DNA from: Malacoraja senta
Lineage: Eukaryota
Length of the DNA: 60,508 bases
NCBI GenBank assembly: GCA_038087875.1
Contig: JAXLNO010004401.1
Span: 3,493-64,000 of the forward strand
Direction: 5' to 3'
Below, in pieces: positions 25,371 through 60,508 of the stretch (within the stretch, counting starts at the first letter, position 1; each line of letters starts with the position of its first letter). The notes under the pieces were generated by a model. It was not told where the DNA came from, did not search any database, and saw only the letters and a list, made by a program, of their open reading frames with translations. A program made the translations under genes and the position numbers.

Positions 25371-26089
25371 TGTTTTCAAGAGAGAGTTAGATTTAGCTCT
25401 TAGGACTAAGGGAGTCAAGGGATATGGGGAAAAAGCCAGATCGGAGTATTAATTTTGGATGATCAGCCATGATTGTATTGAATGGCGATGCTGGCTCAAA
25501 GGGCCGAATAGCCTATTCCTGCACCTATTTTTTATGTTTCTATCTTTCTATTAAATAAACTAAATTGGAAGACTGAAGGTATTGACTGATGCATCTTCAC
25601 GCCAGCTGTAAATGTCATAAACTGTGAGAATTGATTGCAAATGTTATACAATATTCTAAACTAAACTGGGTGATCAAAATGACAAGATGGATGAAGAGCA
25701 GTTTTCATTCAAATAACAGACGTGCAGCTTTCTCGAGCACTTGGCCTTGGTTGTGTAATATTTCCTCTTCAAAATACAATGTTCCCAGGCATTGCTGGTC
25801 TGAGACACCATTCAGTAAGTATATTTCCTGAAATTGAGATTCTGCTTTCATGGTATCAAGATGTCTAACAGCTCCAGCACCCAGATCAGAACCTTGCCAA
25901 AACTAAGAATGCAGCAACAATTTAGTCATTGAACATCAACGACATGCATATTTCAACTGAGGCAATGGTTAGCTTATTATCACTGTAAACCAGTCATGGT
26001 GATGGGTCTGCCATTGTGGTCATTATTAGTGAGGGTGATTAACTATCATTTAGCAGTGAAACGGAAAAGAATTGGCTTTTCAAGCCCAC

Positions 26090-26630: not shown

Positions 26631-29299
26631 TTTCTTTTAAAATCTTTTTATTGTTTTTTTTCCAAAAAACAAAAACAAAAATAAAACATAAAAAACAGAG
26701 CAAAAAGAATAATGATAAACATAACAATGGTATTGATACACAGGGATCAGGATTAAACACAATAATAACAGGTATAACCTAATATGAGACCAGTGTCAAA
26801 ATACACAATGAATATAGACCTCTCGGTCTCTATGTAAATATAGTTAAATCTTTAAAAGGAAACATAAATGTAAANNNNNNNNNNNNNNNNNNNNNNNNNN
26901 NNNNNNNNNNNNNNNNNNNNNNNNNNNNNNNNNNNNNNNNNNNNNNNNNNNNNNNNNNNNNNNNNNNNNNNNNNNNNNNNNNNNNNNNNNNNNNNNNNNN
27001 NNNNNNNNNNNNNNNNTGAACTGAGAAATTCAACAATTTAAGTCTGTTTGTCGTCAAGTCCGTTCCACCCTATGAAGGTAAAATAATTTTTATAACAGTT
27101 AAAGAGGGATCAATTTATGTTGTACGAATGCGTTCAATAAATTCCCCCCAAGTCTTATCAAATTTAACCAAGGGTTCAACAATGTCACTTCTGATTTTGT
27201 CTAAATTTAAACATGATATCGTTTCAGAATACCTTTGGAGTGTGGTCGGAGGGTTGGAATCTTTCCATTTAAAGAAAATAAATCGTCTGGCAATTAATGT
27301 GGTAAAAGCAATCAACCGATGGGCGGAGTGGGACAAATGAATATAATCTAACATTGGTAACCCAAAAATTGCAGTAATAGGATGAGGTTGTAAATCTATA
27401 CCTAAGACTACCGAAATAGTATCAAAGATTTCTTTCCAATATTTTTCCAAAAGAGGGCAGGACCAAAACATATGGGTCAGTGATGCCACTTCAGAGTTAC
27501 ATCTGTCACAGGTAGGATTTATATGACCATAAAAACGAGCTAACTTATCTTTTGACATATGAGCTCTGTGGACCACCTCGAATTGTATCAAATCGTGTCT
27601 TGCACACATTGAAGAGGTATTAACTAATTGAAGGATCCTCTCCCATTTCTCTCTAGATAAAGACATTTGGAGTTCTCTTTCCCAGTCATTCTTAATTTTA
27701 TCAAATGTATCTATTTGTAATTTTAAAATCAACTCATGAATAGTCGTTATTAATCCTTTCTGATAAGGGTTCGACTGTAAAAAAATTCCAAAATTTTGGG
27801 TTGATGTGGTAGCGGGAAAAGGGGTAGTTCCTTTTGTCTAATTTGTAAATATCCAAAAAAGTGTGAATTAGGTAAGTTATATTTATTGGAGAGTTGTTCG
27901 AAAGACATAAAACAACCCTCCAAAAACAAATCACAAAAAGCTACTAATCCCTTCCTCTTCCATAACAAAAAAACTTGATCAGTACTAGATGGTTGGAAGG
28001 GTAATTTGGATAAAATCAGATAGTCCAAAAAACTTACGAAATTGAAACCGTATTCGGAACGTATGTCTTATTATTGGGTTCGTCATATATTTATTCAATC
28101 TCGTAATTGTAAAAGGTACCGAGGTCCCTAGAATAGAAGCCAATTATAGCCCTTGTAATGAATCACGTTCTAGGTTTATCCATCCAGGGCATTGGGTATC
28201 TTCTAAATCTTTTGTCCAAAATGTTAAATAACGAACATTGACTGCCCAATAGTAGAGTCTATGGTTCGGCAATGCCAAACCGCTAACATTTTTTGATTTC
28301 TGTAGGTATTTTTTACCTAGTCTGGGATTTTTATTCTGCCATATATATGACGAGATTTTAGAGTCTATAATATCAAAGAAAGATTTGGCAATAAAAATTG
28401 GTATCGTCTGAAATAAATACAGAAATTTAGGTAAAATAAAAATTTTAATAGCATTGATTCGGCCAATTAAGGATAGGGACATTCGCGACCATTTAGTGAA
28501 CTGATGTTTAATATGGTCAATTAAAGGAATAAAATTAGCTTTAAATAAATCCTTGTGTTTCTTGGTGATCTTAATACCTAAATAAGTAAAACTTTCGGTA
28601 GTCAATCTAAATGGAAACTGTCCACAACTCGAAACAAAATTATTTAATGGGAAAGCTCACCCTTACTAAGATTTAGTTTATAACCAGAAAAACTACTGAA
28701 TTGATTAAGTAATGCTACTATTGCCGGAATAGATTTCTCAGGGTTAGAAATAAATAATAACAGATCATCTGCATAAAGAGATAGCTTATGTGTCTTATTC
28801 CTGCGGACAATACCAAAAATATTAGGAGGTTCCCTAATAGCAGTGGCTAAAGTTTCCAAAGCAATATCAAATAGTAAAGGACTTAAGGGACAGCCCTGTC
28901 TAGTACCTTGAAAGAGCCTGAAAAAAGGGAATCTCTGATTATTAGTAAATACAGAAGCCTGAGGTATAAGATATAGCAGTTTGATCCAAGAGATAAATTT
29001 TGGACCAATCTTAACTTTTTCAAGTATATTGAATAAGTATTCCATTCTACTCTATCAATAGCCTTCTCGGCATCAAGTGAGATGACACATTCTGGGGTTT
29101 TATTAGACGCTGTATATACAATATTTATTAATCTCCTAACATTAAAGAATGAGTAACGATTTTTAATAAAACATGTCTGATCTTTAGAGATAATTTGCGG
29201 TAAAATCTTTTCCAATCTCATAGGTAATATTTTGGAAGGAATTTTAAAATCTACATTTAACATTGATATCGGTCTATATGATGTCACTTCAGTAGGGGC

Positions 29300-29768: not shown

Positions 29769-32700
29769 TTTTTTATTGGAGATGCGTACACAACCTGGTT
29801 ACATCATTACAGTCTTACATTATTAAATTGATAATATTGTTAAATATTATTACAATGTCTCCAATACCTTTTGCTTTTTTTTTAAGGTAAATAGAACTAA
29901 AGAGANNNNNNNNNNNNNNNNNNNNNNNNNNNNNNNNNNNNNNNNNNNNNNNNNNNNNNNNNNNNNNNNNNNNNNNNNNNNNNNNNNNNNNNNNNNNNNN
30001 NNNNNNNNNNNNNNNNNNNNNNNNNNNNNNNNNNNNNNNNNNNNNNNNNNNGAAACATTTATTAAAATAGAAAACTTCATTCGAGATATATTCGTACATT
30101 TCTAGATATAGCGTTTCATCCATTCTTTAGCCCGGGTGCTAGTCAGGTTCCTGTGCTGAACTATTCTGGCCCTTTAGGTAGTCAATAAAAGGAGACCATG
30201 TTCCAACGAATAATTCCTGTTTATCCAACAGGGAGAGTCTGATTCTTTCCACATTTAAGGTCTCCGTCATTTCTATAATCCACATTTTAATTGTGGGGGT
30301 CGTAGGGCCTTTCCAAAATTTTAGAATTAATTTTTTTCCTGTTATTAAACTATAATCAATAAAGTTTCTTTGTGTTATTCTAAATGTTTGATTTAATTCT
30401 AATATTCCAAGTATTATTAATTTTGGATCTGGGTCCAATTTTGTGCTGGTTACTTTAGATATTATACTGAAAATATTTACCCAGAATTGTTTAATTTTTA
30501 TACAGTTTGCAAACATATGAGATAAGGTAGCTTCTAAATGTTGACATTTATCACATATAGGTGAGATATGTTGAAAAAATTTATGTAGTTTTGTTTTGGA
30601 ATAATGTAACCTATGTATTACTTTGAATTGTATTAGAGAATGTCTGGCGTTTAATGAACATTGATGTATGTGTTGCAAACTTTCTTCCCAAGTATCTTTC
30701 GTTATTATTTGATTTAATTCTTTTTCCCATGTTTGTCTATGTAAGTCCGTCGATGGAATGTCACTGTCTAATAAGATATTATATATATAAGATATTAATT
30801 TTTCTGTATGAGGATGTTTGTTCCAACATTCATCAAGAATTTCTGAATTTCTAATTCGAAAATTTTGAGTATTTGATTTTACATAATCTCTAAGTTGAAG
30901 ATATCTGAAGTAATCATTTCCTCGAAGTCCGTAAGTCTGTTGCAACTCCTGAAATGTCAGAAAAGTGCCTTCCTTGTAAAGTTGTCCCATATTTTTAATT
31001 CCATAATTCTTCCATTGTGTAAAACCCCCGTCCAACCATGAAGGCTTAAACAAAGGGTTATTCACAATTGGAAGAAAAAGTGATAAATTATCTAATTTTA
31101 ATGTCTTTTTTAATTGTTTCCAAATTCGTATAGCACTAAATATTATAGGGTTTTCCCTATAAATTTTTTTGTTTAATTTAGACGTAGCAAATAAAATCGA
31201 ACCGATATCAAAAGGTAAACAATCTTCCTTTTCCATTTTTAACCAGTCTGGCTGATGATCTATTTCTTCCAACCAGAAATTCATATTTTTAATATTAACT
31301 GCCCAGAAATAAAACAAAAAGTTGGGTAAAACCAAGCCTCCATTCATTTTTGATTTACACAAATGTCTTTTGTTTATCCTATGATTCTTATAATCCCAGA
31401 TGAAATCATTAACAATAGAATCCAGTTTTTTAAAAAAGGTTTTTGCCAGATATATCGGAATTGTCTGAAAAAGGTATAATATTTGCGGTAAAAAAATCAT
31501 TTTTATGGCATTAATTTTGCCTACCATTGAGATAGGAAGTGTTTTCCAGTATTGAATATTCTTATGTAGTTTATTTAGTAATGGTGGAAAATTTGCTTTA
31601 AATAATGATGTATATTTCTTAGTTATATAAATACCTAGATATTTAAATTTTTCCTTTACTATTTTAAATGGAAATTGTTGTATTATCTGTTTGTTATGTT
31701 CCCTTATTGGCATAATTTCACTTTTATTCCAATTTATTCTGTATCCTGAAAGTGAACCAAATTGGGTTATTAGCTTTAATAAGTTTGGAATACTAATTTC
31801 TGGTTTTGTAATGTAAATTAATACATCATCTGCGTATAAAGAAATTTTATTCACTGTATCCTTTGTGTTATATCCGTGTATTTCCGGATGCCCCCTGACT
31901 CTTTCTGCAAGTGGCTCAATAGCAAGCGCAAATAATAATGGAGATAACGGGCATCCTTGTCTACAACCTCTAGATAGACTAAATTTAGATGACAACCTTT
32001 GGTTTGTAAATATTCTAGCCGTGGGATTTGTATATAACAGTTTTATCCATGTACAGAATTTCTCCCCTAACTGCATATTTTCCATCACCGAAAATAAATA
32101 AGACCATTCGACCTGATCAAATGCTTTTTCAGCGTCAAGTGAGATTATTGCTAGATCTTCCTTAATATTTCTCTTGGAATATATAATATTAAATAATCTT
32201 CTTAGATTATAATATGAGTACCGCTTCTGAATAAAGCCTGTTTGGTCAGGGTGTATTAATTTATTCATCACTGTACTTAATCTATTCGCTAGTATTTTAG
32301 TTAATATTTTCTGATCTGTATTTAAAAGTGCGATTGCTCTATATGATCCCGGGTCTTCCGGATCTTTATCAGCTTTAGGAATAAGTGTTATTATAGATTC
32401 ATTTAAAGTGTCTGGAAGTTTCTGTTGAGTATAGATATACTCATACAATCTTTGTAAACGTGAGCAAAGCAAGTCATGACATTTTTTATAAAATTCGGAG
32501 CCTAAACCATCTGGTCCTACTGCTTTACCATTTTTTAAAGAGCCGATAGACTCCTCAATATCTTTTATGGTAATCTCCTTTTCTAATAATTCTCTATCGT
32601 TTGAATCTAAACCTTTTAAATTACATTTTAGTAAAAAATCTGCTATTTCTTCTGATTGTCCTACGGTTTTAGTTGAATAAAGGTTATGATAGTATTGGAG

Positions 32701-39465: not shown

Positions 39466-42400
39466 CTTAAACCTGTTTTTGCTGGTTCTTGATTACCCTA
39501 CCCTGGGTAAAATAAATCCTGATCAATCGCCCTCATGATTTTAGAAAGCTCTCTAAGCACCAATTAAATGGTTTCAATTATAGATAGAGTAAGACTTTGT
39601 GGTTATTTCCAACAAGAATTGTAGACTAAAGAAAGGCCAGTGGAAGTACTTGGTCAAACAGCATCTGTGGAGGCAAATGACATATACCAACATTTCAAGG
39701 CAAGGCACTGCATTAGAATTGAAGGAGAGGATGGGAAGATTCTAACAGTTTGAAGGAGGAATGGGGCAGAGGCTGGTAAGTGGCAGGTGGAATCAGCTGG
39801 GGATGGGATGATGGGCAGATGGAGCAAAGTTGGTGTATGGGTGGTTGTGGGAGAACAAATGAACACCAGTGGTATGGATAAGCTGAAATGTGAAAACTTT
39901 ATATTCATACCATCGGCTTGTAAGTTACCCAGGTGGATTATCAGATATTTTACTTAAAACTTTCTGTGCCCAAGATTAACGACAGATGGGTCAGTGTGAG
40001 AGTGGGAAGGGGTATTAAAATACCATACAACAGATCTCAGGATGATCTTTACTTCAAAGGGATGTGCTGTACAAAATGGTTGACATCTAAGCTAGTTTCT
40101 CCACAGTGTGAGCAATGAATGCAGAAGAGAAAGTTGAAAGAGGTGCAAGTGAACCTCTGTCTCATTTGAACAGTTTATTCTCCTGTTGTTCACCTCGTCC
40201 TCCTCCTCTCCTACCTGTTTCCATCTACCCATTATCCTCTTCCCACCTGGTTCTACGTTTGATCTACCAGCCTCTGTCCTATCCCTCCCTGATTGCTATA
40301 TATTGGCAATTCATCCTCTTCCCTCACAGGCCTGGTGCAGGTTCTTGACCCTATTTGTGACATCAAACATTTGTCCCAATAATTTGCTTGAGCCATTGAA
40401 TGCTTTCAGTCTTCTGTTTTTAGTTGCAGATTCCATTAGCTACATTCATTATTGGATAGAATATATTTTGTTTTAACACTGCATTTAATCTGAGACACAG
40501 CACCAATAAATGTTGTTACATAACGCTTGGTTATTTGATGATGTCAAAAAGGCTTGATTGCTTGTACTTTGTACATTTCTAATCTAATGCAAAGAATTTA
40601 TCATCCATATGAATATAAAATTGTCCAGTGACTGGTGGTAGAGTGATCAAGTTCATTTTATGTGCCTCATTTCGTACAAGTTCTGCTCTTGAGATTTCAC
40701 CTAATAATAGATGCCTGTAGAATGTGCTTGATGAATAGATCATTGAGTATAAGATTTTTGGAAATAGATTGGCATGAAATCCAAGTAAACACATTGGATT
40801 GCACCCTGTTTTATAGTGGCTTCATGTTGCGAAGTAAAGGCAAGATATATGGAATATGCAAGATATAATATGAAAGATATAATATGCAAGGCGCAAAATT
40901 AAATTGTTGTTAAGAAAATGTAAAGCCTCCATTTATTTGCAACAGCATCAATCACAGTTATCTTACGCCAAAGTTAATTTTGTATTTTTTAGAGAATGAA
41001 TGGGAACAAAATGATCAAAAATGAATTGGCAGTCAAAGTAATACAAGGTTGTAGTGGAGACAAGTGTGTATGAACAGGCCACTCTGCCAATCCTGCCAAT
41101 ACTGGTGCATATGGTTAACATGAGCCTCTTCCCACCTTATGCGATCTGCAACATGGTTGGCAAGTCTGTGCTGGATTCTCCAATGTAGAACGGACTTTTC
41201 TTTTCTCTTTTGTGTTTGCCCAGCCTTCCCCTAAATGCAATTCATTGATCTGGATCCCCATTCTCACCAGTATTGTGAGGGAGGGGAGGAGAGGGAGCAT
41301 TCTCTGTAGAATTCCCTGCTGGATTTTATGGTGTAAATGTTTTCACCATAGTGATTCATTTAAAAGCTTTATGTATTTTAATATCACCCTTCAGCCACTT
41401 CTCAAAGGGGTGGGGGGCAGGGTGTGAACGACTTACCCAGGGACATTCGATGACCGTGTTTTGTTTATTTTATCCAAACATTTTTTAATATAGATTAATA
41501 TAGTATTATTTTTTGTATCTTGGGTAAGCACATTGAAATAGCAATGGATGGCGTGTTCAGAAAATTATTTCTGATTTGTCCTCGCTTTGTGAACACCAAA
41601 CCAATGTATGCATCTGTCTTATTTGCAAAAAGGCATTGGCACCAGGGTCTCGGTTCCTTTTAAGCATCCCAGTTATCATGTTCTTCGATGCAGAGGAAAT
41701 GTGGCCTCGATAAATACAAAAATGTTGAAATGCAGAATATAAAAGTAATAGGAATTCAGGCATTTGAGCCTCAACTATTATTCCATGTGATCCATTGTGA
41801 CTTAAAATTTATACCTTGATACTTTCATTTCTCTGATCCTTTGACCATACAAACAACATATAACTCTTTGTATAAATTCAATGATATGTGTTCAACTGCT
41901 TCCAGTGGTATAACATTCCACACCTTCATCATTCTGTGGGAGAAGTAATCGCTCTTCATCTCAACTTGAAGCCTGATCATCAGATTGTGACCACTGGGTC
42001 CTGAACTGACCGGATTTCCCTCTTGAATATATNNNNNNNNNNNNNNNNNNNNNNNNNNNNNNNNNNNNNNNNNNNNNNNNNNNNNNNNNNNNNNNNNNNN
42101 NNNNNNNNNNNNNNNNNNNNNNNNNNNNNNNNNNNNNNNNNNNNNNNNNNNNNNNNNNNNNNNNNNNNNNNNNNNNNNNNNNNNNNNNNNNNNNNNNNNN
42201 NCTCTTTCTCGTTTTTCATATTGTTTACCATGTACTATGTTTACATATTCCATTTTGCTGCAGCGAGTAAGAATTTCATTGTACTATCTGGGACATATGA
42301 CAATAAAACACTCTTGACTCTCTTCAATCTGTACAGACCCATAAGAATGTTGTAGTTGATTTTGAATGGTCCTAATCACAATGTAAAACTGATCGCCCAA

Positions 42401-45522: not shown

Positions 45523-46095
45523 TGTTACGAATCCCGAATGCAGGTACTTCAGAGCCGCGTAACATAACTCAAAAACCAGGTTCAAGTTCCAAAATAGTTT
45601 TAATTATTCAATAACATAAAACCCAAACCTGATTCAAACAACCCAGTCAGGGTTATGGATGGACTAACAAACAATTTAACGGTGCTCCAGCCAGCCACGT
45701 GATGGACCGTCGAACCGGAGACTCTAAAACCTGCCTAAAAAGATATAACCCTGAAACAAAATACCCGAAACACTAGATAAGCCCTTATCCGTCCCAATTC
45801 AATATTTCGTAAGGGTGAAAGTACACAAAGTTCTATGCCAAGTGGCCAGGCCTTCCGCAGCTCACTCCAGCAGTCAGCTCACAAGTCAGGGTCGACGAAG
45901 GAGAGAGAGAATCCTGGGATGACTCTGGTATTTAAGCTTCAGATGAGTCACCCGTCACCTGTCGCAGCTTGGCCAATCAGGTACAGGAGCCTTTTAACCC
46001 TTTGATTCCAGACTCACAGCCACAAGGCCTGCACTCAGGAAAGAAACAGAGAAAGGTAAGTACATATCATTCACCAGGGGAGGAAGCGCCGAACA
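45523..46095 (-). repeat. 3' LTR of the left gypsy (573 bp)
   Basis: TGTTCGGCGC...CGTAACA on the minus strand; adjacent PPT at 46096-46107. Confidence 0.93.
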
Positions 46096-49000
46096 CCCCC
46101 ACCCAAAGATACTGAATACGTTTCGGAAGAAGAGAGAAAAAACACCACCAAATCCCAGAAAATATTCAGGAGCTGAAACTCCACTGGCGCGACAAGGCAT
46201 CAGCCAAGACATCATCCTTGCCACGGATATGCCTGACCTCTAGGTTGTAGTCTTGCAGCTGCAAACTCCAGCTCATTAACCGCCGGTTCTTATTCTTCAT
46301 ACTTTTCAAAAATACCAACGGATTATGATCCGTGAGTACAATGACAGCGACATTCCAGGAGCCAACATATACCTCGAAATGATTCAGAGACATTAAAATA
46401 GCAAGGGCTTCTATCTCAATGGTGGAGTACCACTTCTGATGACGATTAAACTTCTTTGAGAAGTACGAAATTGGATGCTCCACCCCATCTGAATCATCCT
46501 GTAGAAGAACTCCCCCAACCCCACGATCACTAGCATCCACTGCCAGCTTAAATGGACGATCAAAATCAGGTGCCGCAAGCACTGGTGCGCGCACCAGAAG
46601 ATTTTAGTATGATCAAAGGTTTGTTGACACCCTGCGGACCACACAAAAGCTACCTTCGGACTCAGCAAATCCGTCAAAGGGGCAGCTACCGCAGAGAAGT
46701 TTCGACAGAATCCTCTATAGTACCCAACCATAGCCAGATACCTACGGAGTTCAGTCGAGGTTGGAGCAGGAAATGCGACAATATGCTCCACCTTTTCCTT
46801 GAGAGTACGAACCTGACCCCGGCCCACCACCTTACCCAGATACGTTACCGTGGCCTGGCCAAACTCACACTTCCCCAGATTGATATTGAGCTTTGCCTCC
46901 GCTAGACGATGAAATACCTCCTTCAGATGACCGATGTGTTCGATCCACGACCTGGAGCACACAACCAAATCATCAAGGTATGCCTCACAAAAGGACAAAC
47001 CAGACGTTCACCAACCGTTGGAAGGTTGCCGGCGCATTGCGCATCCCAAATGCCATTACTGTGTACTGCAGAAAGTTATCAGGCGTAACGAACGCTGAGA
47101 TCTCCCTCGCCCACCTAGTCAAAGGAACTTGCCAATACCCTTTTAACAAGTCCAACTTAGACACAAAAGATGCACTTCCCACACGATCCACGCAATCCTC
47201 CATTCGTGGGAGAGGATAGCAATCCGGCTTAGTTACACCATTCACTTTCCGAAAGTCCGTGCAAAACCTGTCCTCCCCATTAGCCTTCGTTGCCAATAGA
47301 CACGGAGAACTCCACGGACTACAAGTAGGTTCAGCAATGCCATGCCGCAGCATAGAGTCAACCTGACTCCATAGACGATGACGCTTGTCAGGGTTGACCC
47401 GATACGGATGCTGTTTAATTGGCGCAGCACCGGCCACGTCAATGTCATGCTGCAGTACAGATGTCTGAGAAGGCTCATCCGAGAACAGTGACCCATTTGA
47501 CTCCACCAAAGCCAGCAGATCACCCCGCTGACTTTCAGTCAAATGAGACAACCGCAAGGGAAGCGACTTCAAAGCCTCAGAGCCTTCCCTACGTCACTGC
47601 CTCCGACAACCGTGCCTCTCCCACATCACCACCCGTGTCAGGGGGCAGCACCACTGCAGCCAAAACAGGCTTAGACGAAACCGAAGGACACAGCACCTCC
47701 CCATCAACCTCCACAGGCTCCTGCTCATGGTACTGCTTCATCATGTTGACATGACAGAGCTGAGTCTTTCGCCTTCGATCAGGGGTACCAATAACATAAT
47801 CCCTTTCACCAACCTTCTTAACCACCGGATCGGGACCGCTATACCGAGCCTGTAGACTGGAACCAGGAATAGGCAACAACACCAGGAACTTGTCACCTGG
47901 AGAAAAAAATCCTACTAGAAGCCTTCCTGTCGAACCACCCCTTCATCCTAGACTGAGCAGAAGCAAGATTACCCATTGCCAGTTCGCAAGCCCTCTTCAG
48001 TCGAGACCGAAAGGTACAGACGTGGTCTAAAATACTTCGTTTAGTATCCTCCTGCAACCATTTCCCCTTTAGGACCGTCAACGGACCACGTACAGTATGC
48101 GCGAACACCAGGTCAGCAGGACTGAACCCTAAAGACTCTGCACCATCGGAACAGCCGTCACCTCAGGAGTAACTAAAACTCTACTTCCTGCCAAGTCATT
48201 CCCCAAAATTACTGAAACTCCCCCAACGGGAAAACACGGCCGTAACCCAACAGTTACCCGGCCTGAAACCAACTCGGACTCGAGACTCACGGTATGCAAA
48301 GGCACTACCATGCCCTCCATCCCGAATCCTACCACAGGGGCACTTGACCCAACCGATGATTCCACAGAAAACGGCAGTACACTATCCAATATAAAGGACT
48401 GAGTAGCACCAGTATCACGTAAGATGGATACTGGAACTCTATCACTCCCATCCTCCAGAGAAACAAAACCATTCATGATGAACGCAGAATAATTCCTACA
48501 CTCATCAGACTCAGGCACCTCAGGTACCACAGGTGCCTTCTGTGTACCCACCAAAGCCACAGGCTTTGCATTTTTCTGCTTCAGAACGGGGCACGCCTTT
48601 AACATGTGCCCTCTCCCTCTACAATAGTAGCAAACAGGACCTTCATTAGTCCTCAAATTTCCATCAACCTTATGAGCTCGGACCTCCCACTGTATCAACG
48701 TGCTGCCACTTGCAGGCACAGAAACACCTTTGACACTGCCACCGGCGACACCACCACGATCAACCGGCCGTGCACCAAAACTATAGGAGCGCCCAACAAA
48801 ATCAGTTTTATGAGTCAATAAATACTCATCTGCCAGCACCGCGGCCTTAGACACCTCATTCACCTTCTGCTCATTAAGGTAAGTAGTAACCCTCTCAGGG
48901 AGACAGTTCTTAAAGTCTTCCATAATAATCAAGGCCCGCAGTTACCCAATATCCTTCACTCCTTGAGAAGCGCACCACCTGTCAAAAGGTGCCTCCTTCT

Positions 49001-49871
49001 CCCTTGCAAACTCCACATAAGTCTGACCATCAAACTTCCTAAAGCGCCAGAATTTCTGCCGGTACGCCTCTGGAACTAATTCATAAGCCCTTAATACTGT
49101 AGACTTCACACACTCATAGTCCAGACTGCTTTCAACAGACAAAGACGAGTACACCTCCCGTGCTTTACCCACAAGGACACACTGCAATAGCAAGGTCCAC
49201 ACGTCCCTAGGCCACTTCAGTGATATAGCAACACGGTCAAACAAAGTGAAATATTTATCAACATCTATTTCACTGAACGGTGGAACCAAACGAATATTCC
49301 TGCTCACATCAAACTCCCGTTCCCTAGAAGAAACCCGGGAGGCATCCAATTCCTTCTCCCGCAGCCTAATCACTGCCCTCTTGGTTTCCTCCTCAGCCCC
49401 ACGCAGCTGAATCTCTGCTCTTTTGGTCTCCTCCTCTGCTTTTGCCAGCTCAAACTCCTTCAACCTAATGACTGCCTCCATGTCCTGACCAGGCTGAACA
49501 GAAGGTGTGGGACTGTCTGCACAGCCAGGCAAAACCCCACCCTCCACCAACGCAGCCCACAACACCGATTTAATGGACTGTTTCCTTGAATGTGGGTTAA
49601 TAGGCACTTCATAGTTCTCAGCCAGAAAAATCAAATGCTCCTTCGTACATCTATCAAACAACTCCCGACTAGGAGCCTCAATAAAGTCCTTCCCTTTAAA
49701 CTCCATATCAAATGTAGCACCAAACCACCAGCTAAACACTGGGCACCAATGCTACCACAAACAGGGAAGAAACATTTCCCTCACAACACAGACTTCCTTA
49801 CTCACCAGAAGCCTACTAAAAAAAAACCAAACACGTCTAGGGTCCTCAAAACTCAGGACGAACCCCCATGT

Positions 49872-50455
49872 TGTTACGACTCCCGAATACAGGTACTTCA
49901 GAGCCGCGTAACATAATTCAAAAAACAGGTTCAAGTTCAAAAGTAGTTTTAATTATTCAATGGAACACAAAACCCAAACCTGATTCAAACAACCCAGTCA
50001 GGGATATGGATGGACTGACAAACAATTTAACAATGCTCCAGCCAGCCACGTGATGGACCGTCGAACCGGAGACTCTAAAACCTGCCTAAAGAGATATAAC
50101 CCTGTAACAAAATACACGAAAACACTAAGGTCAGCCGTTATCCGTCCCAATTCAATATTTGTTAATAAGTAATGGTGAAAGCACACAAAGTTCTATGCCA
50201 GGTGGACAGGCCTTCCGCAGCTCACTCCAGCAGTCAGCTCACAAGTCAGGGTCGACGAAGAAGGGGCAGAATCCTCGGAGCCTCTGGTATTTAAGCTTCA
50301 GATGAGTCACCCATCACCTGACGCAGCTTGGCCAATCGGGTACAGGAGCCTTTTAACCCCTTGATTCCAGACTCACAGCCACAAGGCCTGCACTCGGGAA
50401 AGAAACAGAGAAAGGTAAGTACATAGCCTTCACCAGGGGGGGGAAGCGCCTAACA
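49872..50455 (-). repeat. 5' LTR of the left gypsy (584 bp)
   Basis: TGTTAGGCGC...GTCGTAACA on the minus strand; PBS immediately internal. Confidence 0.95.
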
Positions 50456-50600
50456 ATCAGTACCACCACAGTGTGCCCCTCCATCAGTACCACCACAGTG
50501 CGTCACTCAACCAGTACCACCACAGTGTGTCCCTGCGTCAGTTCTGCCCCATTTTTATCCCTCCATCAGTACTATCTCACTGTGTCCCTCCATCCGTGGG
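50456..50600. repeat. ATCAGTACCACCACAGTGTG-type minisatellite (mirrored at ~57045-57189)
   Basis: Four to five degenerate ~26-bp units. Confidence 0.85.
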
Positions 50601-51491
50601 CGGAGAGAGGGCAGTCCAAAGAGGGGGAATAGAGAGTATAGGGGAGAGAGTAACAGTTCAGAGAGAGTGACAGCAGTAAGGATGGAGGGAGAGAGAAAGA
50701 GGGGAGGGAGAGGTGCTGCATCATTCGATGTTTTATTTAGGTTGAGGACAAGTCTGAGGCGGCAATGTTTCTGTTCTCTGAGTGTCGTGAGTCTTTGGGT
50801 CGTTCCTCCACAGAGTTGATGAAGGAAGGCAGAGAATGGTATTGTCCCATGGTATAGCCAGATCTATTCCAGGCAAGCAGGGAGTGAATGGTTCCCGGGG
50901 TCATTCAGCGGGAGTGTGGGGTTGAGGTCACAGTCAGTGAAGCCGCGATCATATTGAGTGGAGGGGGGGTGGGGTGGGGCATTTTAGTCTGAGGTGATGT
51001 GTTGAACTAATTCCTCAACCTGTGGACAAAGGTCGCCCAGTCCAGTTCACCTTCAAACTGGGCACCAGAAGCCCTGAGAGGGTCCCTGGAATTTGGCATT
51101 GCCTTGCTGAGTGAAACGGATTGAAGGAAATAAGTCAAACAACATGAAGTGGCGTGTTGGATCCGATGGAGTTTGAAACAATATCCCTTTTGATGGAACA
51201 TTGCCGCCGCTCCCAATTTCCATTCCTCAGTATCTATCGCCACAATTCCCAGTCTTTGGAGTTTCTCAATCAATTCCCTGAATAAATCACAACCTGTCTC
51301 AGCAGGCATTTCACTGGGCTGATGTCATCTGTTTGTGAATCATTTCAAAATCTCTATTTTTAAACTCTGTTGAAACTTCACTGTCCCAGTTGAGACGGAA
51401 AATGGTATAATATCTCCAGGAATGTTCTGTCCCAGCATTTCATTCCGAGACATTACCGGTGGCTCACGGGGACACGTCGCTGGGCAGAGAA

Positions 51492-51567
51492 ATGGGGGAA
51501 AAGCTGCGGGAATATGTCGACGTGGAGAAAATCCTGTACGTGATCATTGCTGACGTTGGAGTCCCTG
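51492..51567 (+). CDS. GPR139/GPR142-like GPCR exon 1, left copy (N-terminus and TM1 start)
   Basis: ATG at 51492, MGEKLREYVDVEKILYVIIADVGVP, then G|GTAAGT; phase 1 joins 53869 to give GVP-V-NLVAIVVLSRGKCG. Confidence 0.85.
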
Positions 51568-52301
51568 GTAAGTGAGCAGAGCAATTCAAGTTTTATAACT
51601 CCATCCGTGTATAAACTGGTGTTGGCCTGATTCTCATCATGTTACAAGTTCCCAACTGATGATCGTTGTACAAGAATATGTGAGGAATATCAATCCTCTC
51701 AGTGAAATATTTGTGAATTAACGCTGTGCTTTTTCTTATTTTCAGACAGCTTTTTCTCTCACTGCTGCCGGCCGGGAGCCACTAGAATGTTGTTCTTGCC
51801 TTCAGTGGGATTTTGCCCAGAGTTATCCTAGTGCTCGGGACAGTCAGGCAGGCAGGCAGCTCTCCGGGACGGTGTGACTGGGAGAGAGGGGTTCATATTG
51901 TGAAGTTCACTGTGTCTGAGTTATTGATCAGAGTGAACACCCGCTCCTGTAGACACTGTGTCTCACTGTGGAGTCTGTCTGTCACAGTCGGCTTCCACCC
52001 ACAGCCTGTTGGTCAATAATTGGATCGATCTCCTGAACCAGTGGCCGCGGATCTACCGGTGTGTGTGTATGTGTTGTTACTTCACCTGCACCATCTTGAG
52101 TCTGCGGAAATTAGCCGCTTTATGTCTAAACTAACCCGCCTAACTCAACCCCCCCCCCCCGCCCTGTCTCTGTGCTTTGGTGCAAAAATCCACACCGTCC
52201 ATACATGGGGATAATAAGTTGCATTCCTGGCACCGTCTGGATTTCGTGTGTGGGAAAGACCTGCAGATGCTGTTATAAATCGAAGATAGACACAAAGTGC
52301 T

Positions 52302-52425
52302 GGAGTAACTCAGCGGGACGGGCAGCATCTCTGGAGAGAAGGAATGGGTGACGTTTCGGATTCAGACCCTTCTTCAGTCCCATTCCTTCTCTCCAGAGAC
52401 GCTGCCTGTCCCGCTGAGTTACTCC
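52302..52425 (-). ncRNA. Foldback repeat (47-bp arms) with an intact hammerhead core in the loop
   Basis: Minus strand CTGAAGA-AGGGTCTGAATCC-GAAAC-GTC (52349-52377); arms 52302-52348 and 52379-52425 match at 45/47. Confidence 0.7.
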
Positions 52426-52862
52426 GCTTTCTGCGTCGACCGTCTGGACCAGAAGGGGTGGACTCTCATTTGCAACAATTGTGAAGGGCACCTTGTGTGG
52501 GGAGGGAGAGAAAGAGGAATATCAGGGATTATTGGATATGGCGGCCATTGTAGTGCGTTCTTCCCCCAGCTTTACCTTTACCTTTAGAAAGGAGATGAGG
52601 AGGAATTTCTTTAGACAGAGGGTGGTGAATCTGTGCAATTCATTGCGGCAGACGGGGGTGGAGGTCAAGTCAATGGATAGTTTTAAGGCGGAGAGTGATA
52701 GATTCTTGATTAGTGCGGGTGTCGGGGGGTTATGTGGAGAAGGGAAGAGAATGGGGTTGAGAGGGAAAGATATATCGGCCATGATTAAATGGCGTAGACA
52801 TGATGGGCCGAAAGTGTAAAGTGTTTAAGAAGGAACTGCTGGTGCTGGAAAATCGAAGGTAC

Positions 52863-53023
52863 ACAAAAGTGCTGGAGAAACTCAGCGGGTGCAGCAGCAT
52901 CTATGGAGCGAAGGAAATAGGTAACTATTTCCAGTCTGAAGAAGGGTTTCGGCCCGAAACGTTACCTGTTTCCTTCGTTCCATAGATGCTGCCTCACCCG
53001 CTGAGTTTCTCCAGCACTTTTGT
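52863..53023 (+). ncRNA. Foldback repeat (~63-bp arms) with an intact hammerhead core
   Basis: CTGAAGA-AGGGTTTCGGCCC-GAAAC-GTT at 52936-52963; arms 52863-52925 and 52961-53023. Confidence 0.72.
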
Positions 53024-53194
53024 CTACTCTTGTGTAAAGTCCTTTCAGAGTAATTTCCCTTATCTGTGCTGAATGCTAACCTGGTTCTGGAAGGGCAGAG
53101 TTTGGGGATAATGCAATAGATGAAGTAGTTTGCATCAAGAAGCCATTGGGATAACCTCAGTGGAAGCTTGAGAGTGATGAGTGGTGGGTGTGGA

Positions 53195-53400
53195 ATTCTC
53201 TGTCTCAGAGGGGCGGTGGAGGCCGGTTCTCTGGATGCTTTCAAGAGAGAGCTAGATAGGGCTCTTAAAAATAGCGGAGTCAGGGGATATGGGGAGAAGG
53301 CAGGAACGGGGTACTGATTGGGGATGATCAGCCATGATCACATTGAATGGCGATGCTGGCTCGAAGTGCCAAATGGCCTCCACCTGCACCTGTTGTCTAC
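53195..53400 (+). mobile_element. CR1 3' end fragment
   Basis: TTCAAGAGAGAGCTAGATAGGGCTCTT...GGGGATATGGGGAGAAGGCAGG...GATCAGCCATGATC, as in the 3' end of the 4252-9100 element. Confidence 0.85.
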
Positions 53401-53868
53401 TGAACTCACTGTGGAATGAATCCATTAACGGAGCCACTCTGTTGCCGAATTCCATGTTGTCCCTGCCTTCCCTCTGGAAGCCTCCTCGTCCCCATCAGAT
53501 GCCGAGTTCCCAGAGCCCTGGTCAAACGCGGCCGGCCGCTCACGGTTAAGTCTGTGAAAGCGGCCCCATCACAGACTTTGAGCAGCAGCAGTGTTAACTA
53601 TAGAAAGGACCATTACGCCTATTGTAGCGGGTGGCGGCTGCTCGTTCCCTCCCCGCCCTTTACCCGCCCGCCCGTCGCCTTATCTCTTCTCCCCTGAAGC
53701 AGGCAGGCAGGTCGGGCACAGTCGGAGCCGGCTCTGACATTGTTAAACTTGCAGCAGCCGCGCACCGAATCCAACACTCCTGATCTTGAGCTGAAAGTCG
53801 AGCCGGTGTTCAGCCCCGGAGACCGTGTTGAGTAAATGCCCAGTGTCCGTTCCCTTGTCTTTCCGCAG

Positions 53869-54573
53869 TGAATTTAGTGGCGATTGTGGTCCTGTCCCGG
53901 GGAAAGTGCGGCCAATCCACCTGCACCACTCGCTACCTGGTGGCCACGGCAGCGGCCGATCTACTGGTCGCCATCACCGGGGTCATTTTGTATCGGATCC
54001 GAGAGCATTACTTTTATTGGAGTTTCGTGTCCATCACCCCTGTGTGCAGTGTTAACTATGTACTGAAGTTTGCAGCTATAGACTGTTCTGTCTGGTTCAC
54101 CGTCACTTTCACCTTTGATCGCTTTGTCGCCATTTGTTGCCAGAAGCTGAAAACTAAATATTGCAGCGGGAAAACTGCGGCTGTGGTTCTGGCAACCGCC
54201 GGCGTTCTGTTCTGTGTGAAAACCATTCCCCGCTACTTCACACTGGAACCATGGTATATCATCGACAATGTCCCGTGGGGCTGTGACACGGTGGACAGTT
54301 ATTTCACTGACCCCGGTGGGTGGCATTTGACTGGATCGACACGGTTTTAACTCCGTTCCTCCCTTTCGCTGTAATACTGCTGCTCAACGCTCTGACAGTC
54401 CGCCACATTTTAGTGGCCAGTCGGGTCCGTAAGGGGCTGAGGGGTGAGAGCAAGGGGGAGAACCGCAGTGACCCGGAGATGGAGAGCAGGAGGAGGTCTG
54501 TGGTTTTACTCTTCACCATCACCGGCAACTTCATCCTCCTGTGGCTGACGACGGTTGTAGAATTCGTCTATTA
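53869..54573 (+). pseudogene. GPR139/GPR142-like GPCR exon 2 (TM1 end to TM6), with a 1-nt frameshift near 54315 and truncated by a gap
   Basis: Acceptor CTTGTCTTTCCGCAG; NLVAIVVLSRGKCG, AAADLL (TM2), PVC, FTFDRFVAIC (TM3); frame switches at DPG to WVAFDWIDTVLTP..LLNALTVRHIL..ESRRRSVVLL; N run 54574-54773. Confidence 0.88.
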
Positions 54574-54773
54574 NNNNNNNNNNNNNNNNNNNNNNNNNNN
54601 NNNNNNNNNNNNNNNNNNNNNNNNNNNNNNNNNNNNNNNNNNNNNNNNNNNNNNNNNNNNNNNNNNNNNNNNNNNNNNNNNNNNNNNNNNNNNNNNNNNN
54701 NNNNNNNNNNNNNNNNNNNNNNNNNNNNNNNNNNNNNNNNNNNNNNNNNNNNNNNNNNNNNNNNNNNNNNNNN
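54574..54773. other. Assembly gap at the centre of the inverted duplication (other gaps: 3322-3540, 26875-27016, 29906-30051, 42033-42201)
   Basis: Runs of N. Confidence 1.
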
Positions 54774-57700
54774 CACTTTTGTGTACCTTCGATTTTCCAG
54801 CACCAGCAGTTCCTTCTTAAACACTTTACACAAGAGTGCAGCTCGCAGGAGCAGAAGCAGGCCATTCGGCCCATCATGTCTACTCCGCCATTCAATCATG
54901 GCCGATATATCTTTCCCTCTCAACCCCATTCTCTTGCCTTCTCCCCATAACCCCCCGACACCCGCACTAATCAAGAATCTATCACTCTCCGCCTTAAAAC
55001 TATCCATTGACTTGACCTCCACCCCCGTCTGCCGCAATGAATTGCACAGATTCACCACCCTCTGTCTAAAGAAAATTCCTCCTCATCTCCTTTCTAAAGG
55101 TAAAGGTAAAGCTGGTGGAAGAACGCACTACAATGCCGCCATATCCAATCATCCCTGATATTCCTCTTTCTCTCCCTCCCCACACAAGGTGCCCTTCACA
55201 ATTGTTGCAAATGAGAGTCCACCCCTTCTGGTCCAGACGGTCGACGCAGAAAGCGGAGTAACTCAGCGGGACTGGCAGCATCTTTGGAGAGAAGGAATGG
55301 GACTGAATCCGAAACGTCACCCATACCTTCTCTCCAGAGATGCTGCCCGTCCCGCTGAGTTACTCCAGCACTTTGTGTCTATCTTCGATTTATAACAGCA
55401 TCTGCAGGTCTTTCCCACACACGAAATCCAGACGGTGCCAGGAATGCAACTTATTATCCCCATGTATGGACGGTGTGGATATATGCACCAAAGCACAGAG
55501 ACAGGGGGGGGGGGTTGAGTTAGGCGGGTTAGTTTAGACATAAAGCGGCTAATTTCCGCAGACTCAAGATGGTGCAGGTGAAGTAACAACACATACACAC
55601 ACGCCGGTAGATCCGCGGCCACTGGTTCAGGAGATCGATCCAATTATTGACCAACAGGCTGTGGGTGGAATCCGACTGTGACAGACAGACTCCACAGTGA
55701 GACACAGTGTCCACAGGAGCGACTGTTCACTCTGATCAGTAACTCAGACACAGTGAATTTCACAATATGAACCCCTCTCTCCCAGTCACACCGTCCCGGA
55801 GAGCTGCCTGCCTCCCTGCCTGTCCCGAGCACTGGGACAACTCTGGGCAAGGTCCCACTGAAGGCAAGAAGAACATTCTAGTGGCTCCCGGCCAGCAGCA
55901 GTGAGAGAAAAAGAGGGTTAGTTTCAGCGTTAATTCACAAATATTTCACTGAGAGGATTGATATTCTTCACATATTCTTGTACAACGATCATCAGTTGGG
56001 AACATGTAACATGATGAGAATCAGGCCAACACCAGTTAACACACGGATGGAGTTATAAAAACTTGAATTGCTCTGCTCACTTACCAGGGACTCCAACGGC
56101 AGCAATGATCACGTACAGGATTTTCTCCACGTCGAAATATTCCCGCAGCTTTTCCCCATTTCTCTGCCCAGCGACGTGTCCCCGTGAGCTACCGGTAATG
56201 TCTCGGAATGAAATGCTGAGGCAGAACATTCCTAGAGATTTTATACCATTTTGCGTCTCCACTGGGACAGTGACGTTTCAACAGAGTTTAAAAATAGAGA
56301 TTTAGAAATGATTCACAAACAGATGACATCAGCCCAGTGAAATCCCTGCTGAGACAGGTTGTGATTTAATCAGGGAATTGATTGAGAAACTCCAATGACT
56401 GGGAATTGTGGCGATAAATACTGCGGGATGGAAATTGGGAGCGGCGGCATTGTTCCAGCAAAGGGGATATTGTTTCAAACTCCATCAGATCCAACTCTCC
56501 ACCTCATGTTGTTTGTCTGATTTCCTCAATCCGTTTCACTCAGCAAGGCAATGCCAACTTCCAGGGACCCTATCAGGGCTTCTGGTACCCAGTTTGAAGG
56601 TGGACTGGACTGGGCGACATTTGTCCACAGGTTCAACACATCACCTCAGACTAAAATGCCCGCCCCCCTCCACTCTGCTTCACCACTCAATATGATCGCG
56701 GCTTCACTGACTGTGACCTCAACCCCACACTCCCGCTGACTGACCCCGGGAACCATTCACTCCCTGCTTGCCTGGAATAGATCTGACTATACCATGGGAC
56801 AATACCATTCTCTGCCTTCCTTCATCAACTCTGTGCAGGAACGACCCAAAGACTGACGATACTCAGAGAACAGAAACATTGCCGCCTCAGACTTGTCCTC
56901 AACCTAAATAAAACAGCGAATGATGCAGCACCTCTCGCTCCCCTCTTTCTCTCTCCCTTCATCCTTACTGCTGTCACTCTCTCTGAACTGTTACTCTCTC
57001 CCCTACGCTGTCTATTCACCCTCTCTGGGCTGCCCTCTCTCCGCCCACTGATGGAGGGGACACAGTGAGATAGTACTGATGGAGGGATAAAAATGGGGCA
57101 GAACTGACGCAGGGACGCACTATGGTGGTACTGATGGAGTCAAACACTGTGGTGGTACTGATGGAGGGGCACATTGTGGTGGTACTGATTGTTAGGCGCC
57201 CCCCCCCCTGGTGGAGGCTATGTAATTACCTTTCTCTGTTTCTTTCCCAAAGTGCAGGCCTTGTGGCTGTGAGTCTGGAATCAAGGGGATAAAAGGCTCC
57301 TGTACCGGATTGGCCAAGCTGCGTCAGGTGACGGGCGACTCATCTGAAGCTTAAATACCAGAGGCTCCGAGGATTCTGCCCCTTCTTCATCGACCCTGAC
57401 TTGTGAGCTGACTGCTGGAGTGAGCTGCGGAAGGCCTGGCCACCTGGCATAGAACTTTGTGTACTTTCACCATTACTTATTAACAAATATTGAATTGGGA
57501 CAGATAAGGGCTGTTTTCGTGTATTTTGTTTCAGGGTTATATCTCTTTAGGCAGGTTTTAGAGTCTTCGGTTCGACGGTCATCACGTGGCTGGCTGGAGC
57601 ACTGTTAAAGGTGTTTGTCAGTCCATCCATATCCCTGACTGGGATGTTTGAATCAGGTTTGGGTTTTGTGTTCCATTGAATAATTAAAACTACTTTTGAA

Positions 57701-59495
57701 CTTGAACCTGGTTTTTGAATTATGTTACGCTGCTCTGAAGTACCTGTATTCGGGAGTCGTAACAAAATGGGGGCTCGTCCTAAGTTTTGAGGACCCTAGA
57801 CGTTTTTTTTTTTTTAGTAGGCTTCTGGTGAGTAAGGAAGTCTGTGTTGTGAGGGAAATTTTTCTTCCCTGTTTGTGGTAGCATTGGTGCCCAGGGTTTA
57901 GCTGGTGGTTTGGTGCTACATTTGATATGGAGTTTAAAGGGAAGGACTTTAATGAGGCTCCTAGTCGGAGTTGTTTGATAGATGTACGAAGGAGCATTTG
58001 ATTTTTCTGGCTGAGAACTATGAAGTACCTATCAACCCACATTCAAGGAAGCGGTCCATTAAATCGGTGTTGTGGGCTGCGTTGGTGGAGGGTGGGTTTT
58101 GCCTGGCTGTGCAGACAGTCCCCACACCTTCTGTTCAGCCTGGTCAGGACATGGAGGCAGTCATTAGGTTGAAGGAGTTAGACGTGGCAAAAGCAGAGGA
58201 GGAGACCAAAAGAGCAGGGATTCAGCTGCGTGGGGCTGAGGAGGAAACCAAGAGGGCAGTGATTAGGCTGCGGGAGAAGGAATTGGATGCCTCCCGGGTT
58301 TCTTCTAGGGAACGGGAGTTTGATGTGAGCAGAAATATACGTTTGGTTCCACCGTTCAGTGAAAGAGATGTTGTTAAATATTTCACTTTGTTTGAGCGTG
58401 TGGCTATATCACTGAAGTGGCCTAGGGACGTGTGGACCTTCCTATTGCAGTGTGTCCTTGTGGGTAAAACATGGGAGGCGTACTCGTCTTTGTCTGCTGA
58501 AAGCAGTCTGGACTATGAGTGTGTGAAGTCTACAGTATTAAGGGCTTATGAATTAGTTCCAGAGGCGTACCGGCAGAAATCCGGCGCTTTACGAAGTTTG
58601 ATAGTCAGACTTATGTGGAGTTTGCAAGGGAGAAGGAGGCACTTTTTGACAGGTGGTGCGCTTCTCAATGAGTGAAGGATATTGGGCAACTGCGGGCCTT
58701 GATGATTATGGAAGACTTTAAGAACTGTCTCCCTGAGAGGGTTACTACTTACCTTAATGAGCAGAAGGTGAATGAGGTGTCTAAGGCCGCGGTGTTGGCA
58801 GATGAGTATGTATTGACTCATAAAACTGATTTTGTTGGGCGCGCCTATAGTTTTGGTGCACGGCCGGTTGATCGTGGTGGTGTCGCCGGTCGCAGTGTCA
58901 AAGATGTTTCAGTGGCTGCAAGTGGCAGCACGTTGATGCAGGGGGAGGTCCGAGCTGATAAGGTTGATGGAAATTTGAGGACTAACGAAGGTCCTGTGTG
59001 CTACTATTGTAGAGGGAGAGGGCACATGTTAAAGGCGTGCCCCGTTCTGAAGCATAAAAATGCAAAGCCTGTGGCTTTGGTGGGTACACAGAAGGCACCT
59101 GTGGTACCTGAGGTGCCTGAGTCTGATGAGTGTAGGAATTATTCTGCGTTCATCATGAATGCTTTTGTTTCTCTGGAGCATGGGGGTGATAGAGTTCCAG
59201 TATCCATCTTACGTGATACTGGTGCTACTCAGTCCTTTATATTGGATAGTGTACTGCCGTTTTCTGGGGAATCATCGGTTGGGTCAAGTGTCCCTGTGGT
59301 AGGATTCGGGATGGAGGGCATGGTAGTGCCTTTGCATACCGTGAGTCTCGAGTCCGAGTTGGTTTCAGGCCGGGTAACTGTTGGGTTACGGCCGTGTTTT
59401 CCCGTTGAGGGAGTTTCAGTAATTTTGGGGAATGACTTGGCAGGAGGTAGAGTTTTAGTTACTCCTGAGGTGACGGCTGTTCCGATGGTGCAGAG
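54774..59495. repeat. Right arm of the large inverted duplication
   Basis: Begins directly after the gap matching 52871 in reverse and extends through the second gypsy copy. Confidence 0.95.
56085..56229 (-). CDS. GPR139/GPR142-like GPCR exon 1, right copy (in frame only from an upstream ATG at 56229 or 56262)
   Basis: MFCLSISFRDITGSSRGHVAGQRNGEKLREYFDVEKILYVIIAAVGVP then G|GTAAGT; 145 nt, phase 1. Confidence 0.7.
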
Positions 59496-60508
59496 CCCTG
59501 ATAGATTGGCTATGCAGCATCCGAGGGTCTTCGCAGCTTGTGCTGTCACGAGGGCTATGGCTAAGAGCCAGGCAAAGTTTGGGGATGTAGTGGACCCAAG
59601 TGAGAGCATTTTGGGGGATCAGGATGAGGGATCCTGTGTTGTGAAGGGTGTTTCTGCATCTCAAGATGGGATAGTGTCTGGAAATGGGCCGGTGACGCTG
59701 TCACGTGGCCGGCTGGTTGAGGAGCAAAATAGTTATCCAGGTCTATCTGATCTGTTCGACTGCGCGGTGCCTGAGCGGGATATGGATTCCACAGCAAAGG
59801 GGTATTTTCTAAGGGAGGGCTTACTGATGCGAAAGTGGTCTCCCTTGGATATATCTGGGCATGATGATTGGAGCGTGGTTGATCAGATTGTGATACCTCG
59901 TCGGTATAGGGACGAGATACTCTGTTTGGCTCATGATGGACCTCTGGGTGGACATTTGGGGGTCAATAAGACGTATGACCGTATCTTACGGAAAATTTTT
60001 TGGCCAGGGTTGAAAAAGGACGTGAAACAGCAGTGCAGGTGTTGTCACATTTGCCAGGTGGCAGGAAAGCCGAACCAATCGATTGTTCCTGCGCCTTTAT
60101 ATGCAATCCCTGTGGTCGGTGAGCCGTTTGAGCGGATTTTAGTTGATTGTGTGGGTCCTCTACCTCGGACAAAAGTGGGCAACAAGTTTTTATTGACAAT
60201 TATGTGTGCGTCTACCCGCTTTCCGGAGGTGGTCCCTTTGCGTAGAATTACTGCCCCCATCATTGTGAAGTATCTCACTAAGTTTTTTTCGTTGTTCGGT
60301 TTGCCCAAGGTGGTGCAGAGTGACCAAGGTTCCAACTTCATGTCGAAGGTTTTTGGTCAGCTAATGAAGTTGCTTGATATTAAGCATTGTTACTCCAGTG
60401 CGTATCACCTGAGAGCCAGGGAGCTCTCGAGAGGTTTCACCAGACTTTGAAATCGATGTTGAGGACTTACTGCCTGGAGTTTGAAAAAGACTGGGATGAG
60501 GGGGTTCA
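57190..60508 (+). mobile_element. Gmr1-like Ty3/gypsy copy 2 (5' LTR, gag, PR, IN; continues past the window end)
   Basis: LTR 57190-57764; PBS TGGGGGCTCGTCC (57768-57780, complementary to the tRNA-Pro 3' end); CYYCRGRGHMLKAC; LRDTGA; HDGPLGGH..CHIC; VDCVGP; SDQGSNF; several frameshifts. Confidence 0.95.
58672..60450 (+). CDS. Gypsy gag C-terminus, protease and integrase open frame (592 aa, ends at a frameshift)
   Basis: Continuous CCHC-PR-IN(HHCC, D..D) frame; a 1-nt loss near HPESQGALER shifts the frame. Confidence 0.8.
   Translation: MKDIGQLRALMIMEDFKNCLPERVTTYLNEQKVNEVSKAAVLADEYVLTHKTDFVGRAYSFGARPVDRGGVAGRSVKDVSVAASGSTLMQGEVRADKVDGNLRTNEGPVCYYCRGRGHMLKACPVLKHKNAKPVALVGTQKAPVVPEVPESDECRNYSAFIMNAFVSLEHGGDRVPVSILRDTGATQSFILDSVLPFSGESSVGSSVPVVGFGMEGMVVPLHTVSLESELVSGRVTVGLRPCFPVEGVSVILGNDLAGGRVLVTPEVTAVPMVQSPDRLAMQHPRVFAACAVTRAMAKSQAKFGDVVDPSESILGDQDEGSCVVKGVSASQDGIVSGNGPVTLSRGRLVEEQNSYPGLSDLFDCAVPERDMDSTAKGYFLREGLLMRKWSPLDISGHDDWSVVDQIVIPRRYRDEILCLAHDGPLGGHLGVNKTYDRILRKIFWPGLKKDVKQQCRCCHICQVAGKPNQSIVPAPLYAIPVVGEPFERILVDCVGPLPRTKVGNKFLLTIMCASTRFPEVVPLRRITAPIIVKYLTKFFSLFGLPKVVQSDQGSNFMSKVFGQLMKLLDIKHCYSSAYHLRARELSRGFTRL

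Follow-up and report, generated by a model that had tools for sequence, protein, structure and literature searches.

Does a single second exon serve two promoters that face each other across it, or does the locus hold two separate genes of which only one has been assembled into its second exon? This question is raised by a stretch of 60,508 nucleotides from the skate Malacoraja senta (GenBank assembly GCA_038087875.1, contig JAXLNO010004401.1, positions 3,493 to 64,000 of the forward strand; hereafter the window, in whose own numbering all positions are given), in which two inverted arms each carry the first exon of a G-protein-coupled receptor (GPCR) gene and one exon 2 is visible between them. 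A first-pass annotation of this DNA had offered two readings, namely an invertible switch, in which recombination between the arms would flip the center and hand exon 2 to the other promoter, and a tail-to-tail gene pair whose second exon 2 is hidden in an undersized assembly gap. From the analysis described here we conclude that the locus probably comprises two paralogous receptor units in opposite orientation, the second exon 2 being unassembled.

Inverted arms and the contig break at their inner end

A repeat search and gapped local alignment paired positions 48136-52871 (left arm) with the reverse complement of 59495-54774 (right arm) over 4670 columns; identity is 96.4%, and of the 24 indels eight span 5 bp or more. 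The inverted arms are real and lie far above chance expectation, and the extent of at least 4.7 kb given by the first-pass annotation is borne out. Its estimate of about 93% identity applies to the worst of the 250-bp steps, across which identity ranges from 93.2 to 98.7%, and not to the arms overall. The longest perfect tract between the arms is 155 bp, and the most diverged compartment, at 94.3%, is the promoter-side DNA between the long terminal repeat (LTR) and exon 1. The coordinates of all features are collected in Table 1.

Both arms contain an exon 1 with its GTAAGT donor, as the annotation had described, and the two first exons show the differences GTC/TTC and GAC/GCC that it had listed as diagnostic. 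The upstream sequence that it had placed in each arm amounts to ~1 kb. Farther out, the last ~2.3 kb of either arm belong not to a promoter but to an LTR retrotransposon, whose 5' part (gag, protease and LTR) lies there and is directed away from the receptor gene. In the left copy, exon 1 and exon 2 join in phase 1, with the junction codon split into G and TG. When the exon pieces were used as tblastn queries, exon 2 gave one match in the whole 60.5-kb window (53868-54571, plus strand), facing the same way as the left copy; the annotation was therefore correct that a single exon 2 is visible and that it is oriented with the left first exon.

The sequences that flank the 200-N gap are discontinuous. 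To the left is transmembrane helix 6 (TM6) of the receptor on the plus strand (…NFILLWLTTVVEFVY), to the right is the reverse complement of a hairpin (foldback) element of the intron, and a frame read through the N run continues into non-receptor sequence. Positions 54774-54865, on the right, correspond in reverse complement to 52812-52871 of the left arm plus a 32-bp indel, and 52814-52871 matches 54831-54774 in 58 of 58 positions, in keeping with the earlier observation that homology runs up to the gap edge. The left-hand bases just past 52871 belong to the foldback element, the first part of whose right copy occupies 54774-54865, where the right contig begins. The right arm thus stops because its contig stops at a high-copy hairpin, not because homology stops, and the impression of a single central exon 2 is an effect of the contig break and not of an end of homology.

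The foldback element has another copy in the window at 2323-2453 and a very high word depth in sequencing runs; repeats of the left intron are also shared with 8959-9072 and 25371-25526. The start of the right contig coincides exactly with the expected start of its hairpin copy. An Rfam scan of 51500-56500 returned no family at the gathering score, hammerhead included.

The left contig, for its part, stops within exon 2. Based on an alignment with six relatives, four of them intact (323-332 amino acids), 67-76 residues are missing after position 54573, which corresponds to 204-231 nt including the stop codon. This length alone equals or exceeds the 200 N, and the rest of the right hairpin would add ~170 nt. 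Because the missing part of exon 2 and the hairpin remainder together exceed 200 N, the gap must have been written too short unless one of these two features is truncated. The annotation had judged that the gap could barely hold the missing TM7 and C-terminus; the required length in fact reaches or passes the N run.

Four sequencing runs were aligned on 52872-56300. Even the best shared only 0.5-0.6 of words, and the runs yielded tens of thousands of contigs, the longest listed being 76-158 nt; the one raw-read run contributed no reads. Within single runs from related skates, 8-23 different contigs carry the same alternative letter at individual positions of the intron, of exon 2 and of the right-arm intron; in those genomes, amplification at ≥95% identity thus extends beyond the coding exon to the whole unit. 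It follows that the arms may each have closer relatives elsewhere. With repeats of a multi-copy family at both contig ends, the scaffold join is weak evidence of adjacency. Read depth is unusable as a measure of copy number in such a family. The window is built from contigs of only ~3-23 kb, and any claim about structure here calls for caution.

Table 1. Positions of the receptor exons, repeats and retrotransposon parts in the window.
Feature	Position	Strand	Description
Left arm	48136-52871	+	Retrotransposon 5' part, LTR, 1.04 kb of upstream DNA, exon 1, first 1.3 kb of intron
Left exon 1	51492-51567	+	25 codons plus 1 base, MGEKLREYVDVEKILYVIIADVGVP; donor GTAAGT at 51568
Left intron	51568-53868	+	2301 nt; holds the hairpin element and repeats resembling short interspersed nuclear elements (SINE-like)
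Foldback element	52815-53040	+	In left intron; DNA fold -76.7 kcal/mol, z -14.8
Exon 2	53869-54573	+	End of TM1 to TM6, cut by gap; acceptor AG at 53867-53868
Assembly gap	54574-54773		200 N
Right arm	54774-59495	-	Inverted, probably paralogous copy; inner end is the contig end at the gap; 58/58 identity at gap edge
Right exon 1	56085-56159	-	Read 56159-56085; same GTAAGT donor at 56084
Left 5' LTR	49872-50455	-	TG...CA ends; 93.6% identical to the 3' LTR at 45523-46095
Rest of left element	45523-49871	-	Putatively Gmr1-like
Left gag	48942-49739	-	
Left CCHC/protease	48129-48932	-	
Left integrase	47589-48108	-	C-terminus only
Left reverse transcriptase	46985-47572	-	
Left 3' LTR	45523-46095	-	
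Right retrotransposon copy	57190-60450	+	Runs beyond the window end
Right 5' LTR	57190-57764	+	
Right gag	57971-58675	+	
Right open reading frame	58672-60450	+	CCHC/protease, then directly Integrase_H2C2 and rve (zinc finger, core)

Receptor family and condition of the copies

Owing to a frameshift in exon 2, the exon pieces were searched separately. The first piece of exon 2 matched the Pfam family 7tm_1 with 38.4 bits (gathering cut-off 30.5; E-value 1.3e-9), and the second piece reached 19 bits against 7tm_1, under the cut-off by itself. The nearest solved structure is that of GPR139 (7vug; E-value 2.6e-8), and only GPR139 constructs are found among the solved relatives. A phmmer search returned 123 clusters at E-values of 1e-10 or lower; all seven that were looked up come from rays and sharks (Mobula, Chiloscyllium, Heterodontus, Hypanus and Stegostoma). 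NCBI names them "probable G-protein coupled receptor 139", "sex peptide receptor-like" or "uncharacterized protein", and identity among the best-scoring relatives is 52-73%.

Intact members of this family are 323-332 amino acids long and consist of a first exon of 23-25 residues followed by one large exon. The window gene has the same two-exon build, with a short first exon that ends in ...GVP and aligns with residues 1-25 of the relatives, and it contains the motif FDRFVAIC in alignment with them. Judged by these sequence features, the gene is a member of a shark-and-ray (elasmobranch) GPR139-like family of orphan receptors within the rhodopsin-like GPCRs. It differs from its relatives in being frameshifted and cut by a gap, and in standing opposite an inverted paralogue instead of in a head-to-tail array. 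A literature search on GPR139, skate and expansion found nothing on the shark-and-ray GPR139-like family.

Both copies are damaged as assembled, the first exon on the right and the one visible second exon each carrying a 1-base frameshift. In the right exon 1, one G is missing right after the conserved ATG (four G residues, compared with five in the left copy), and translation from this ATG meets a stop after 16 codons. The frame is kept only if translation starts farther upstream, at an ATG (56229) that is atypical for a family with a short N-terminus. Exon 2 carries a 1-base deletion in the G run at 54314-54316, where it reads GAC CCC GG- TGG compared with D-P-G-W in the relatives, and the shifted frame stops at 54348; some copies in the related-skate runs have one extra G behind 54314. 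An intact frame through seven helices is thus absent from the window, both through the frameshift and through the unassembled TM7 and C-terminal tail, and assembly error may contribute in part.

The retrotransposon and the divergence of the arms

The retrotransposon insertion is common to both arms, as is the sequence that flanks its LTR. In the left copy the protease leads directly into the C-terminus of the integrase, and at least 950 bp kept in the right copy, encoding the integrase zinc finger and core, are absent. The outer end of the arm alignment (48136/59495) is the edge of this internal deletion in the left element, and the arms probably extend past the window; the reverse transcriptase and 3' LTR of the right copy lie beyond its end. 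The left element's own two LTRs are 93.6% identical, compared with 96.6% for the LTRs of the two arms; the insertion therefore preceded the duplication of the unit. A target-site duplication was not found for the left element, whose flanks (CAGCG and ATCAG) do not match.

An integrase placed ahead of the reverse transcriptase is the order found in Gmr1-like elements of the Ty3/Gypsy group (PMC8220671), and the element in the window has this order. It also resembles them in the TG...CA ends of its LTRs and in a gag with a CCHC knuckle, so that by gene order it would be classed as Gmr1-like. Unlike those elements, both copies in the window are defective, the left one lacking the integrase zinc finger and core. 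Weak SCAN-domain matches were seen on gag.

Identity is not uniform along the arms. The inner 750 bp (52136-52871 compared with 54774-55521), which consist largely of interspersed repeats, are 98-98.7% identical, and the arm middle is 93-96% identical. The high identity of the inner part could reflect gene conversion near the center or smoothing of repeats during assembly. The arms differ by 75 transitions and 92 transversions (75:90 in a blastn pass, which gave 148:137 for the other repeat pairs of the window). Such near-equal numbers between repeat copies throughout the window are low in transitions for vertebrate DNA. As the ratio is near 1 in the other repeats of the window as well, it is a property of the repeats of this genome and not a sign of error, and on this ground we rejected the idea that the differences between the arms are assembly noise. 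A fold-back assembly artefact induced by the hairpin was rejected too, since it would yield identical arms.

Competing explanations for the single visible exon 2

Two paralogous units in opposite orientation would account for the locus as follows. Each unit would consist of a Gmr1-like LTR retrotransposon and, behind it, ~1 kb of upstream DNA, then an exon 1 of 25 codons, which an intron of 2.3 kb separates from exon 2. After the retrotransposon had inserted, the unit would have been copied by segmental duplication, and the copies would since have diverged by ~3.6% plus indels. The left copy is assembled up to TM6 in exon 2, and the right contig breaks off 1.3 kb into the intron at the start of the high-copy hairpin; the hairpin, the remaining intron and the own exon 2 of the right copy would have been left unassembled. 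One shared exon 2 would then be a gap effect and not a design feature, and the damaged copies would fit birth-and-death turnover of a receptor family. The existence of the second exon 2, and its place, we infer. The two units may form a true tail-to-tail pair across a gap of at least 2.1 kb that was written as 200 N, an arrangement that we regard as quite possible though short of probable; that they were instead joined by the scaffolder through repeats seems to us somewhat unlikely. The evidence points toward the corresponding reading of the first-pass annotation, in that the right copy continues into the gap and 200 N are too few even for the rest of the left exon 2, with the caveat that the adjacency itself may be a product of scaffolding.

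Several observations weigh against the explanation by two paralogous units. The second exon 2 was not seen, and none of the short multi-copy contigs from the sequencing runs bridged the gap. The five N runs of the window also vary in length (3322-3540, 219 N; 26875-27016, 142 N; 29906-30051, 146 N; 42033-42201, 169 N; 54574-54773, 200 N), which hints at estimated sizes, and if 200 N is about right, a mirrored exon 2 cannot fit. Finally, both frameshifts lie in G runs (54314-54316 and 56153-56157), where base-calling errors are possible, and the copies could therefore be intact and not decaying.

Were the gap truly only a few hundred bases long, the right arm would end in or just behind the hairpin, beside the 3' end of the only exon 2, and the locus would be a partial inverted duplication whose right promoter and exon 1 are left over as a decaying orphan that lacks any partner for splicing. 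The varied gap sizes would agree with this, as would the frameshift of the right exon 1 from its conserved ATG and the presence of only one exon 2 in the window; hairpin elements are, moreover, plausible breakpoints for a fold-back or template-switch duplication. However, homology is perfect to the contig end, so that no breakpoint is visible, the rest of exon 2 together with any hairpin remainder is longer than the N run, and both contig ends lie in repeats, the usual cause of assembly breaks. We consider a partial duplication unlikely. An assembly origin of another kind, in which the right contig represents the alternative haplotype at the left locus and was placed in reverse by the scaffolder, would be consistent with arms that are collinear over their whole visible length and with a join that falls in repeats. 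Allelic variation nevertheless usually falls far short of what separates the arms (3.6% substitutions, 24 indels and, in the retrotransposon, at least 950 bp of structural difference), and on these grounds we rejected this interpretation, to which we assign a very low probability.

The invertible switch would require a true palindrome with a short gap, that is, the very structure of a partial duplication. Recombination between the arms, rare and occurring in the germ line or the soma, would flip the 1.9-kb spacer and so connect its sole exon 2 with the opposite promoter and exon 1; either module could then drive the receptor. The geometry is valid, since a flip would bring right promoter, right exon 1, intron and exon 2 into this order on the minus strand, and inversion of a spacer by recombination between arms does occur in primate X palindromes (PMC8327919). 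Primate sex-chromosome palindromes have arms of 8-140 kb with an arm-to-arm identity of up to 99.99% that is kept by gene conversion, and exceed 99% where they recombine actively (PMC8327919, PMC3723533). The skate locus resembles them in having inverted arms with gene-family members around a short spacer. It differs in that its arms, 4.7 kb in their visible part, are only 96.4% alike and bear no sign of homogenization, the promoter-side DNA being their most diverged part, and in that a contig end and the 200-N gap separate the spacer from the right arm. In the primate palindromes, furthermore, each gene is contained entirely within an arm or within the spacer, and none has been described as split with a shared exon in the spacer.

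Other systems offer no closer model. The bacterial invertible promoter switches fimS and hin, in which the orientation of a segment between inverted repeats likewise decides expression, rely on repeats of tens of bases and on a dedicated site-specific recombinase encoded nearby. The skate locus has neither; its arms are 4.7 kb long and diverged, and the only recombinase-like gene nearby is the integrase of the retrotransposon. A search of the whole window for RAG-type recombination signals found no match to a heptamer-nonamer. In the variable-first-exon clusters of the protocadherins and UGT1A, several promoters and first exons serve one downstream exon, as could be imagined here, but all first exons lie on one strand and are joined by splicing. 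In the skate, the right exon 1 and exon 2 lie on opposite strands (minus and plus, respectively), so the two are unspliceable unless the DNA inverts. Both of these exons are frameshifted as assembled, exon 2 occurs in no run recorded as RNA, and no expression data were found. With the contig break behind the single exon 2, the divergence of the arms, the frameshifts and the lack of recombination signals taken together, the switch proposed by the first-pass annotation is unsupported, and we consider it the most improbable of the explanations weighed here.

If true, the switch would mean that in a vertebrate gene the choice of promoter depends on the orientation of a DNA segment, and the locus would be remarkable only if the gap were short, exon 2 single and both orientations present. 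As it stands, two paralogous units make it an ordinary inverted segmental duplicate of a fast-turning-over, multi-copy receptor family in a stretch of assembly broken by repeats, and it matters little in itself. It is also a cautionary case, in which a contig break at a hairpin repeat gave an ordinary gene pair the look of a shared-exon switch. The large expansion of GPR139-like receptors in sharks and rays, to which the gene belongs on the sequence evidence, is a more interesting subject than the locus.

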